A stretch of 64,000 bases of DNA from Bugula neritina (lineage: Eukaryota; Animalia; Bryozoa), in NCBI GenBank assembly GCA_964035545.1, contig OZ037768.1:2016741-2080740 (forward strand). Direction: 5' to 3'. The notes beneath the pieces are model-generated. The model was not told the DNA's origin. It ran no database searches and saw nothing but the letters and a program-made list of their open reading frames with translations. Both the position numbers and the translations under genes were made by a program. Within the stretch, counting starts at the first letter, position 1; every line of letters begins with the position of its first letter. Positions 446-38,000 of the stretch are shown piece by piece.

Positions 446-15711
<15,266 letters not shown>

Positions 15712-32000: not shown

Positions 32001-35000
32001 CAATAATAGAGGGAGTGTAGAAGTCATTGAGTGTGGTGAGAAGGCACCGTCTATCCCAGTCATCCGTGACTCTCCCGCCGTAGTTACACTCTCCAGCCAT
32101 GTATGAGATGGCGTCAAACGGCACTTCAGTGTACTCATTCAAATACATCTACAATTCACACTTCTTTCAGTACCTTTTTATAATAAAACTGCTTTTATTA
32201 CAACTATTTTTCTGATAAAGATTGAAGCAATCAAATCACAGTAAAATATATAAATATAATTTGACACATCTCTGTTAATCTGTTTGGGTGATGCTAAAGT
32301 TATAACCATAGCATAGGAGAGAGGAGTTATAGATTTTATTCTTCAAGACAGGTAGAAAGTCTAGCAACATACCTGCAACTGTCTAACAGATATCCTGAGA
32401 TCAGATTCATTAAAGCCGTATGAAATATTCCAGCCAAGAGGACCAAACTTCCGTCTCTCTTGAATCAAAGCATGGAAGAAGCAGAGACCAAACAACAGCT
32501 TCTCAAAATGCTATAAACAGAATAGAAATAATATTTTAAATTGGTATAAGTATAATATAACAACTATCATTACAAAATGTCAAGTATATAAAATGATAGC
32601 TATTCATTATACATGATCTTCACTGTAATAAACAAAAGTACAACTAAACTACTTATACAAGTAGCTGAGAGCACATCAACTCACCGGTTGTTTCTCACCG
32701 CAACCGTTGAAGAATTCCTCGTCACTGATTGGATCATTTAGATACGATTGGAGCAGGTTTTGCCGCAGACCGGTGGGAGGTTCGTTAGTCATCTTCACGC
32801 CATTCTGGAGGACAGTTACAGGAAACTTGTTGGAAGGATAGCTTGTGAGCCAGAGTCTGAAGTCGGGGTGGGTCGTCTCCGGCACCAACTCCTCACAGAT
32901 CTTCTCCATGGCCGTCATCCAAGACACGGCCAAGTGGCAGTTCTGGAGCAGAACCCAGGCACCGCTCTGCTTTGCTTCAGTAATCATCTTAGCTGCTATG
33001 GGACCCTGAAACATATCAGTCAGAAGATAACTTTTAGATAGTCTTTCAAAATTTCCACGTAAATTGTAGTTTTTAGTAAGTTAAAGTCAGTACAAAAAAT
33101 TGCTTAAATGTCTAGATAAAACTATGCTGCACGCTTAAGGTTCAAGTGCTAGAATATATTTATAAATATGATATACTAAAAAATACATAATTTAAAAAAA
33201 TGACCTGTAATTATGTTGCTTAAGTTGGATTAAGATGTTAGATTGAATGCTGTTTTTACTCACCTGTCCTTGACCCAGAGAAATGGAGTTGAATCGTTTA
33301 CCACCAAAGCCTTTGTCGTCTGCAAACTTGAGCAGAGCCATAGTTGGGTCAGCACCGGGAGACAGGATGAATATGAGAGGAGCGCAGCAGTTGGAGTCAG
33401 CGTAACTCTTGGCCAAATCAAACGGAGGTGGCTGAACAAACTTATCTCCCAGTTTCTTAGTTACGAACTTTGTGATTGCAGGAATCATCTTATCGGGTCG
33501 AATGCATCTCAGTATCATCATACTCTGGAAATCATTCATTTTTGAGTCCCACGGGGCAGGTAAATCGGCGTTGTGAGGCTCCTTGTTGTCATAAAAATCT
33601 CTCCACACATGAATATTTTCAGCAACATGCTGTCTGTATGAATATAATTCCAAGTGTTGTGTTACATTACAGTATCTTAGAGATATAGTACGAGTAAATT
33701 GACCAACAGGGAACACTGATTTACTAGCTAAATATTCACATTGCAAAATTTACATCATTATTCTCATAATTTCCTGGCTAAAATATAGAAACATTTAATT
33801 GAATATTTATATTTATTCTACAAATTTCATGAAAAATATATTATATATGTATTATACAACTTTAATGTTTCAAGATAATTTTTCTTTCATTTTACAAGCC
33901 TATATATAATATTTAAAAATTGTTTAAACTTTGGAAGCAATTAGTATAGCCTACTAACCTGAACCCTTTAAAGGGGGGCATATCAGAGAGACGACATATC
34001 TCGTCCCAACTCTTCTCTACCAGCCACGAGTTGTCTGGGTTAGGATTCTTGTTGGCTAAACCAACACCTCCAGTGAGGAAGAACATGAATTCTTCCATCA
34101 GCAACTCTTGCTTAGCACTAAAAACACCGACACATACTACTATTATATTGTATCGATAGTTGAACCCTCTCAAACCACATAGACATAAAAGCCATTAGGT
34201 GCAGTAACAGATAAATTTTAAAAGCCTTAGTTCTTTTAATTGTTTTTCTAAATTTTAATTTGGGGCACAAGTTAGGCCTTTCTCAATTTTTCCATTACTG
34301 CACCTACCTCCTCAAAACCAAGAGACTATAGTTATATAGATTCAATTAGCAGCATTTGAACATAAAATCAGCAACTGAACAATTGAACAAATAGTGAATG
34401 AAAAGCTGTTAGTTGGGTGCAAAGTTCTATTTCCTAGTCTGAGTTCCTAAACCCAGTGACCAACTATATATGGGGATAAACTTTAAACTGGGAAAAATGC
34501 ATGGACAGCAGAAACATCTCTAGACAACAGGATAGACAAACGAAACAAGACAAAAGATTTAAAACAGATGGGGAGTGTTTATCAACATGAAGGATTTCTA
34601 AGTATGAACAGATAATTAAATTTTAATTCTACAAAAAATATCTTATAAATTGTAACATTAAAAACCAAGCTTAACATTATTGATTGTGACAGTCCAAAGC
34701 ATGGTGTTATGAGTTATATGCAATTACAGATCAAAATATCATAGAAGCCAGGACATCACAAAGGTCATGACATCACAAAGGTCATGACATCACAAAAGTC
34801 ATGACATCACAAAAGTTATGACATCACAAAGGTTATGACATGACAAGAGATATGACATCTCAAAAATGTAACATGGCATGACATCACAGAGGTTATGACA
34901 TCACAGAGGTTATGACATCACAGAAATAATGACATCATAAAGAGAATGACATTTCCTAAGCACTAGTAAATAAATGATAGCCAGCAGAGGTGTTATATAA

Positions 35001-38000
35001 CAGAAATTAAAATAGGCAAATGGGTGAGTCAACAGCAAACACATGGGTGAGCCGACAGCAAACAAACAGGTGAGCCGACAGCAAACAAACAGGTGAGCCG
35101 ACAGCAAACAAACAGGTGAGCCGACAGCAAACAAACGGGTTAGTCAGCTGCAAACAGCGGCTTCATCTGACCCTTCAGCCATTACTTACAACAAAATCTT
35201 GGAGCAAAGGACAAGGGAGAAGAGAAGTTTGTCCTTTTCAAACAAAGAGCGACATACATTTGTGTAGAGACTGTATGTAAAATGCTCGTTTAGATACCGA
35301 AGTCGCTTGTCAAGAATCCTAGACTTATTGCTGAAATGAAAGAATAAATGACCCATTTGAGTTACAGAATACTAGACAGTAAGGCTGTTGAATCAGGGTC
35401 GACTCGTTTTGAATACAGTTGAAGTTACCAAACTCATCTCAGAGTGTGCTGTATTCCAGGAGCTCTTTTAGATCTAACAGTCTGCGCTGCGTATAACAGA
35501 GTAGATCCTGATTCAACAGTCTCAGCTCATAGACTGAGTACCATACTTACATCTCTAAACCAGTGCAGAGAATAAAGGAGAACACAAGCTTATGTGTGGC
35601 AAACAGAGATCTGCATACATTTTCATATAAAGAATATTGGAAATGCTCCTTCATATAACGAATCCTTTTCTCTAAAATCCTTGACTTATTGCTGTAAAAA
35701 CATGGCTGTATAATACACAGAAAATGTAGATATGTGCTGTCTGTTTATTAATCTGGTATACCAAACATAAAAGTAACATTCTATAAAATAGATATACAGG
35801 TATTAAATTATCCAAAACTTTTAATCGGGTTGAAAAAAAATCTTTCTATTTAAATAAAGCATAAATTTATGTTTTGCACAGCAGTTGAACTTTTTACTCT
35901 CAACTCTAGAGCTTCATTGATGATCCAATTGTTTATTATAGTGTACAGCACAATTAATAAACAATATTATAATTGTCGCTATAATGCATACCTTTTAAAA
36001 GTTCTACGACACTTTTTAAAAACTTCATTTGCCAAAATCTTTGAAATTATAATCAATGGGGTACAAATAAGTGATGAGGCAACAGAAGTAGAACAAACCT
36101 GTCTTGAATGGAGTTGATGAAGAGATTGACAAACCAGGTCAATGAGTACTGGTACATGGGGTCAATATTGGGAAGATCAGCGATGGAGAAGAAAAGATTA
36201 GCTGAGTGCTTAGCTATAGGTCTGTAACCCATACGGGACGCCTCTATCTTCTTCTCAGTCTCCTCAGCAATCTAACAGTTCAAATATACTCATACTGACT
36301 CAATGTTCTACTGTGTATAGTCAATGTTCTACTGTGTATAGTCAATGTTCTACTGTGTATAGTCAATGTTCTACTGTGTATAGTCAATGTTCTACTGTGT
36401 ATAGTCAATGTTCTACTGTGTATAGTCAATGTTCTACTGTGTATAGTCAATGTTCTACTGTATATAGTCAATGTTCTACTGTATATAGTCTATGTTCTAC
36501 TGTGTATAGTCATTGTTCTACTGTGTATAGTCAATGTTCCACTGTGTATAGTCAATGTTCTACTGTGTAGAGTCAATGTTCCACTGTGTATAGTCAATGT
36601 TTTACTGTGTATAGTCAATGTTTCTTTGTAAATAAAAAGCATAGCCAGTTTTGGCATTGTTATATTTCTTATAGTGCCATTATGTCTCCTAGTTAGGAGT
36701 TGAACATGCTAATTTAAAAAGTTACAAATGAGTGTTAGTATAGGGGGCTTATTAACATGTACACTAAAATATTGCAGTTGAATTAATAGTATTGCATTTT
36801 GCCATATTATTAAAATGTTTGAAAAAATATGAGTACGAGACACTAGATTATATGATGCAATGTTGAAATGAATAGAATACAAACTATTAACAGTAGATCT
36901 GAACTACTAATGGTAATAAGCTACATAAAATAAGAAACCAATTGATAAATGAATTACCTTTTGCTTCTTGCTGATTTCATCTGAAAGAATTTTAGAAGAA
37001 TCTAGAATTTGAATAGCACTCTCATCTTCCAGAATGTTCCCCTCGGATGCTGAAAGCGTGTGCAGAATTTTGTCTTCTATTTCCTTCAGCTGCTTCTTGT
37101 TTTGAGCTGAAGTGATAATCAAACCTTGTCTTTCTTCTTCCAATTCTGGTCTAAAATTTTACAAGAAGTTGACATCTGGCTTTAAAAGACTAGATCATGA
37201 CATCACAAGAGCAAACTATGACATCACAAGGGCAGATTATGACATCACAAGAGCAAACTATGACATCACAAGAGCAGACTATGACATCACAATACCAGAC
37301 TATGACATCACAAGAGCATATTATGACATCACAAAAGCAGACTATGACATCACAAGGGCATATTATGACATCACAAGGGCAGATTATGACATCACAAGAG
37401 CAAAATATGACATCACAAGAGCATATTATGACATCACAAAAGCAGACTATGACCTTACAAGGGCAGACTATGACATCACAAGGGCAGATTATGACATCAC
37501 AAGAGCAGACTATGACATCACAAGGGCATATTATGACATCACAAGAGCAGACCATGACATCACAATATGTACACTCACCTTTCTTTGGCAACGACTATAC
37601 CAAGCAGCTGATCTTCAAGACCCTCTGGAGTTATCATAAAGTTGAGTAGAGACACTTTGACAGCTACCTCTGGCAGATAGTGTGGGTTCCTTAGTTTAGT
37701 AGTGATGTAGAATCTGAATTCCTTGTTGTATTCAATAACATTCTCTCCCAGTCTAATCATGTCTACTCCAGCTACAGAATTGAGCAGCAGGTAAAAATGT
37801 AAGATAAACTAAATTTTGACTTTCTAAATATTCTTTTAGTGTGACAATACACACATATGCTTGCATCATGTGTTCCATCAAGCTCTATACCCTACCATTT
37901 TTTTTAAAAAAGTAAAAGAAATTATAAGCATTGAACACCCGAACTTTATAAAATGATTCATATATAAAAATAGAAATGCTAATTTGTAACCCTAAGGCTA

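Follow-up and report, generated by a model that had tools for sequence, protein, structure and literature searches.

Why does a dynein heavy chain gene keep two versions of one small exon side by side, and what becomes of them in the messenger RNA? The question is raised by a 64,000-nt stretch of Bugula neritina DNA, called the window here, in which two neighbouring exons, A and B, fit the same place in the gene. They might be alternatives spliced in one at a time, they might be stacked within a single motor, or they might be one working exon and the leftover of its duplication; the pair might even have been created during assembly. The parts of the gene that bear on the question are as follows.

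35330..35190, minus strand: exon A, 141 nt in phase 2-2, the canonical copy, downstream of B (from sequence anatomy)
35691..35551, minus strand: exon B, 141 nt in phase 2-2, the B-type copy, upstream of A (from sequence anatomy)
36099..36271, minus strand: constitutive upstream exon, whose donor is common to A and B (from RNA joints)
33959..34117, minus strand: constitutive downstream exon, which begins AKQELL (from joints 35190>34117 and 33959>33633)
36958..37152, minus strand: exon preceding the upstream exon, with the end of the AAA5 large domain (from Pfam AAA_9 and RNA)
33263..33633, minus strand: exon following the downstream exon, with the start of the AAA6 P-loop region (from Pfam Dynein_heavy and RNA)
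35331..35550, minus strand: intron between B and A, 220 nt, containing an inverted repeat

The initial annotation of this DNA had described two 141-nt exons of phase 2-2, bounded by AG and GTAAGT, either of which joins its neighbours in frame, and the sequence bears this out. Each copy is preceded by a pyrimidine tract and AG and followed by GTAAGT. The first base of each, a C, completes a serine codon (AG|C) after the ...NSIQD of the upstream exon, and the last two bases, with the T of the downstream exon, give phenylalanine in A and isoleucine in B. The copies are identical at 91 of 141 nucleotides (65%) and 30 of 46 amino acids (65%), with no stop codons and no indels between them; half of the shared residues (15 of the 30) are written with different codons, for instance AGT/TCT for serine and CGA/AGG or CGC/AGA for arginine. 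Recomputing the amino-acid identity and the codon count returned the values first given. By the NG86 method dN between A and B is about 0.30 and dS is saturated. In a six-frame search of the whole 216-Mb assembly, A and B are each other's best match (E = 4e-15), followed by single exons of four paralogous dynein genes; given this genome-wide E value and the reciprocity of the matches, the likeness is not due to chance. Within the window we found no third copy of the exon and no further duplicated coding exon of the dynein gene. A match at 2302-2692 was considered as another duplicate exon and rejected, as it is merely a 21-nt tandem repeat.

Which motor the pair belongs to, and where in it, was approached through solved structures and Pfam, with exons searched individually rather than as a joined transcript. 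Human DNAH12 (8j07 chain g1) is the best solved chain for both A (67 bits) and B (54 bits), and both copies align to its residues 3179-3224; DNAH7 comes second, with 52 and 44 bits. Four exons in all have this chain as their top solved structure (67, 54, 180 and 86 bits, against 52, 44, 165 and 85 for DNAH7), with a small margin in one of the four (86 versus 85 bits). These matches support a gene encoding a putative single-headed inner-arm dynein heavy chain of the DNAH12 type. Pfam gave no match to A, B, the upstream exon or the downstream exon taken singly, and the domain position of the pair was set through the next exons outward. Exon 36958-37152 contains positions 163-222 of the 222 of AAA_9 (the AAA5 large domain), and the last 42 residues of exon 33263-33633 correspond to positions 2-42 of Dynein_heavy, the start of the AAA6 P-loop model. 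By these boundaries the order around the pair is AAA5 large domain, lid region and AAA6 P-loop, with A or B occupying residues ~58-104 of the ~238-residue stretch between the end of AAA_9 and the P-loop. Judged from this position, the 47 residues of the exon are predicted to form about two helices in the lid region of AAA5. The two exons preceding A/B encode a long charged helical sequence, which we take to be the buttress hairpin familiar from dynein structures, so that a place for the pair directly after this hairpin is plausible. The annotation's assignment to DNAH12 and to the AAA5 small domain thus agrees with both the best structural matches and the Pfam boundaries, and its view of copy A as the canonical DNAH12 sequence fits the match to human residues 3179-3224.

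The alignment also bears on how many copies one motor can hold. On human DNAH12, residues 3121-3177 are covered by the upstream exon, 3179-3224 by either member of the pair and 3279-3401 by exon 33263-33633; as these segments are collinear, there is room for just one copy. In every solved dynein chain, each copy matched a single significant stretch.

RNA contigs from four runs, belonging to four studies, carry GT..AG joints and therefore represent spliced RNA. The joints 36099>35330 and 35190>34117, which take in A, are present in all four runs, and one contig of run X7 (1,208 nt) spans five exons including A, with B skipped. Use of B is documented in run X2, in which a 130-nt contig joins 21 nt of the end of the upstream exon to positions 35691..35583 of B (joint 36099>35691). 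This contig matches B at 113 of 113 bases, and its junction was verified letter by letter. Its depth is 8.0 and that of the A contig of the same run 13.6, such that B makes up about a third of the combined depth. The contigs of X2 break at, or 21 nt before, the divergence of A and B, which sets in 9 nt after the start of the exon, as expected of a two-branch assembly graph in which both branches are present; the A contig itself leads without a break from 21 nt of upstream-exon sequence across A to the exons downstream, and the 5' end of A shows no branch of the kind that a B-to-A joint would produce. The B contig ends 32 nt short of the 3' end of B, which places the joint 35551>34117 outside its reach. 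Contigs of the other three runs lack B, including those of X1 with a depth of about 400x on A, so that use of B differs strongly between samples. No B-to-A joint (35551>35330) occurs in the contigs of the four runs, which show presence rather than absence. Of the junctions by which the annotation had proposed to judge the pair, 36099>35330 and 35190>34117 (four runs) and 36099>35691 (X2) were therefore seen, and 35551>34117 and 35551>35330 were not.

Between 33263 and 37152, 1-5% of exon positions differ between the RNA contigs and the window, mainly by transitions, and the differences recur across studies; high natural polymorphism or a sibling lineage seems a better account of them than editing. 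Beyond this generally high polymorphism, nothing suggests that the pair arose in assembly, as an artefact or through a haplotype that was collapsed or duplicated, and we regard the chance of this as negligible. Identity between the copies is no more than 65% at the DNA level and the changes cluster at synonymous sites, the same arrangement recurs in independent assemblies of other species, and the perfectly matching contig of X2 places B in RNA.

The recurrence in other species emerged from a search with the B peptide, which returned short genomic open-frame fragments, after which the surrounding DNA was fetched. A subset of the fragments carries the B-type signature (HFQY, an acidic residue after LY, and FA.HK). 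Clusters of two to three intact 141-nt copies are present in seven other lineages, represented by about eight to nine assemblies, and in six of these seven lineages a B-type copy comes first and an A-type copy last. The loci are arranged as follows.

L001 (GCA_013332975.1): upstream exon, B-type copy, divergent middle copy, A-type copy, downstream exon
L002/L003 (two contigs of one assembly): B-type copy and two A-like copies
L004: B-type copy and two A-like copies
L005: B-type copy, then A-type copy
L008: B-type copy, then A-type copy
L009/L010: B-type copy, then A-type copy
L016: B-type copy, then A-type copy
L007: two copies, the first less B-like
L006: single copy
L015 (GCA_022702875.1): decayed B-type relic upstream of two intact 141-nt copies

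All 22 intact copies in these relatives are exactly 141 nt long, begin with C or T after an AG and are followed by GT[AG]AGT. Searches with the B peptide and with P0005 gave genomic fragments only, and no spliced transcript with a B-type copy from another species. One of the intact copies in L015 has some B-type residues (E at 23, MHK at 32-34), a mix that suggests turnover within the cluster. The L007 open-frame fragment P0026 has a long, repetitive-looking translated tail after its A-type exon.

A maximum-likelihood tree of the copies, with the paralog exons as root, unites the upstream B-type copies of the window and six further loci, seven in all, in one clade together with two stray fragments (support 99/98); the A-type copies fall with the single-copy sequences in a group that is not resolved. 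Fragment P0019, which is identical to a human DNAH12 segment and possibly human, was left out of the tree. Forcing all upstream copies, including that of L007, into one clade is not rejected (AU test, p 0.34). Taken with the support for the B-type clade, this makes a single old duplication the simplest reading. Dating the event by dS was considered and rejected because synonymous sites are saturated in most cross-species pairs; dS exceeds 0.9 in all pairs but one.

Both copies appear to be held to their own sequence. Cross-species dN ranges from 0.2 to 0.4 for B and from 0.03 to 0.21 for A, and the rate of evolution of B is roughly double that of A. For the three copies of the one close pair, L002/L004, dN/dS is 0.085, 0.083 and 0. 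Five positions separate the types consistently across species (A versus B): T/Q at 18, C/T/S versus E/D/K at 23, E versus A/V at 31, D/H at 33 and L/V at 36. The low dN/dS and the conservation of type-specific residues indicate purifying selection on both copies, each for its own sequence. The annotation had proposed an old duplication with both copies under purifying selection, and this proposal is strongly supported by the intact orthologues of both types in several assemblies that lie far apart in descent and by an omega of about 0.08 where it is measurable.

These observations weigh on the idea that B is a non-functional relic of exon duplication, occasionally spliced in as noise. Its absence from the contigs of three of the four runs, one with about 400x on A, its roughly twofold faster evolution and the decay of the B-type copy in one lineage (L015) would all be natural for such a relic. 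Yet B-type copies are intact, exactly 141 nt long and equipped with splice sites in the window and six lineages in the face of saturated synonymous divergence, omega in the close pair is about 0.08, the type-specific residues are conserved and the share of B in X2 is a third and not a trace. The relic in L015 (positions 294-434), with four stops and no donor site, shows what becomes of a copy released from selection. We therefore think it very unlikely that B is only noise.

The reading we favour, and consider probable, is that an ancient tandem exon duplication has been kept as an alternative-exon cluster, most likely with one copy per mRNA, giving two motors. The common donor at 36099 would be joined to A by default, as in all samples, or else to B, which is abundant in only some of them; B would then be joined to the downstream exon with A skipped, and most likely only one copy would reach the mRNA. 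The two resulting motors would differ at few positions, with T to Q at 18, C/T/S to an acidic or basic residue at 23, E to A at 31, D to H at 33 and L to V at 36. The isoforms may differ in motor behaviour, and the choice between A and B may be specific to cell type or stage. That one isoform would serve sperm and the other somatic cilia, as first proposed, is a guess.

Double inclusion must be weighed against this reading: 141 being a multiple of three, an mRNA with both copies would stay in frame, and surveillance of frame shifts is not applicable as a means of exclusion. B could thus be an optional cassette included together with A, in which case some motors would carry a 47-residue in-frame tandem repeat of two helices. 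The intact frame, an intron between B and A that at 220 nt is long enough for splicing, and a B-to-downstream junction that was not observed are all compatible with a cassette. What makes it improbable in our judgement is that solved dynein chains match each copy once and human DNAH12 is collinear with a single copy, and that the three copies in relatives, two of them 68-70 nt apart in L002 and L004, fit choice better than stacking. The unbranched 5' end of A in the A contig of X2 points the same way, weakly, since contig building removes minor paths. The mutual exclusion claimed in the annotation accordingly stands in part: transcripts with A alone exist and B is spliced to the same upstream donor, and strict exclusion is likely but unproven. 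We regard it as likely because only one copy fits the fold, because relatives have three copies and because two of these in L002 and L004 are separated by introns of 68-70 nt.

How alternative splicing to one copy might be enforced is suggested in part by these introns. In mutually exclusive exons governed by steric interference, which account for 9% of human clusters, donor and branch point are separated by less than 50 nt (Hatje et al. 2017, PMC5740500). Copies 2 and 3 are set apart by an intron of just 70 nt in L002 (4950-5019) and 68 nt in L004 (4875-4942), a textbook layout for steric exclusion and by length short enough for it to act between those copies. In the window, by contrast, the intron between B and A measures 220 nt, so that simple linear steric hindrance is not applicable and exclusion would need a putative RNA fold that shortens the intron in a similar way. 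A candidate is the inverted repeat within it, with arms of 24 nt (35382-35405 and 35499-35522) that are 88% complementary around a 93-nt loop; the fold z-score of the hairpin is -1.6, which is weak. If formed, it would leave about 47 nt between the donor of B and the presumed branch point, a TAAC motif about 32 nt before the acceptor of A that was guessed by eye and not predicted by a tool, and could block B-to-A splicing sterically. We hold this role of the hairpin with low confidence. The hairpin is not conserved in sequence at other loci, with an analogous hairpin in L005. The repeat is unique in the genome, and for this reason we rejected an origin as a mobile-element remnant. Docking and selector pairing between introns was also looked for, and no match of 14 nt or longer came up.

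Mutually exclusive exons are a well-known kind of alternative splicing. Drosophila muscle myosin makes its isoforms by swapping homologous exons for small elements of the motor domain, and the kinetic effects and tissue specificity of these alternative exons have been tested experimentally. The pair described here is alike in that homologous exons would be swapped inside one motor gene, in a different motor family; whereas the effects of the myosin isoforms are known by experiment, the dynein pair is known from genomic sequence and RNA contigs. Pillmann et al. (2011, PMC3228551), who name the muscle myosin heavy chain gene of Drosophila as a test case, reported a mutually exclusive exon in DHC1, the cytoplasmic dynein heavy chain of Schistosoma mansoni; for some dynein heavy chain genes alternative splice forms of the motor domain have been mentioned with no detail (Kollmar 2016, PMC5100056).

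The Schistosoma exon is the closest parallel. It too is a tandem duplicate of a motor-domain exon with the same length, split codons at both ends and strong homology, and its status as an alternative exon was likewise deduced from a dynein alignment that can accommodate no more than one copy. DHC1 is cytoplasmic dynein 1, whereas the gene in the window is of the axonemal, single-headed inner-arm DNAH12 type, and here the pair is orthologous across lineages, is expanded to three copies in some and has RNA for both acceptors. By the standards used to recognize mutually exclusive clusters (Pillmann 2011, Hatje 2017), A and B are neighbours of equal length, share the same phase, have canonical splice sites and are homologous versions of one structural element. 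We found no paper on such an exon pair in DNAH12 or any inner-arm dynein, in keeping with the annotation, which knew of no mutually exclusive exons in an inner-arm dynein heavy chain. A dynein example of this kind of splicing exists, and the DNAH12-type pair is apparently undescribed.

The diversity of axonemal dyneins is usually explained by gene duplication, with one gene per arm position. A conserved and selected exon switch in the motor ring of one inner-arm dynein would add tuning at the level of isoforms and, if true, would be the dynein counterpart of the alternative-exon system of muscle myosin. A wider reading, about which we are slightly more doubtful than convinced, is that a regulated two-state switch of the AAA5 lid, adjacent to the buttress and three-state in some lineages, is older than several invertebrate lineages and that different cilia and flagella use different versions. 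If so, larval swimming cilia, feeding cilia and sperm could run on different versions of the motor. The lid positions that evolution has maintained in two states (18, 23, 31, 33 and 36) offer experiments a handle on the effect of this region on motor output and on the use of either form in different cilia. The locus is also a case for annotation, as gene predictors will drop B or stack both copies.

Several features of the surrounding DNA are recorded as observations in their own right. The introns on both sides of the pair are filled by minisatellites with units of 17, 23 and 21 nt (34700-34970, 34994-35177 and 36279-36400). A pair of 34-nt inverted repeats lies at 34196-34306, in the intron between exon A and the downstream exon, and a piece of about 40 nt at 34274-34313 occurs in many unrelated RNA contigs with differing flanks (summed depth 15,155 in X1); this piece probably represents the end of a mobile element or a short dispersed repeat, of a type frequent in transcripts. 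Finally, at about 717000-1770000 of contig C239 in genome G000, the exon peptide has hundreds of weak, regularly spaced matches (E 0.02-0.8) in long open frames, which look like a large tandem array unrelated to dynein.
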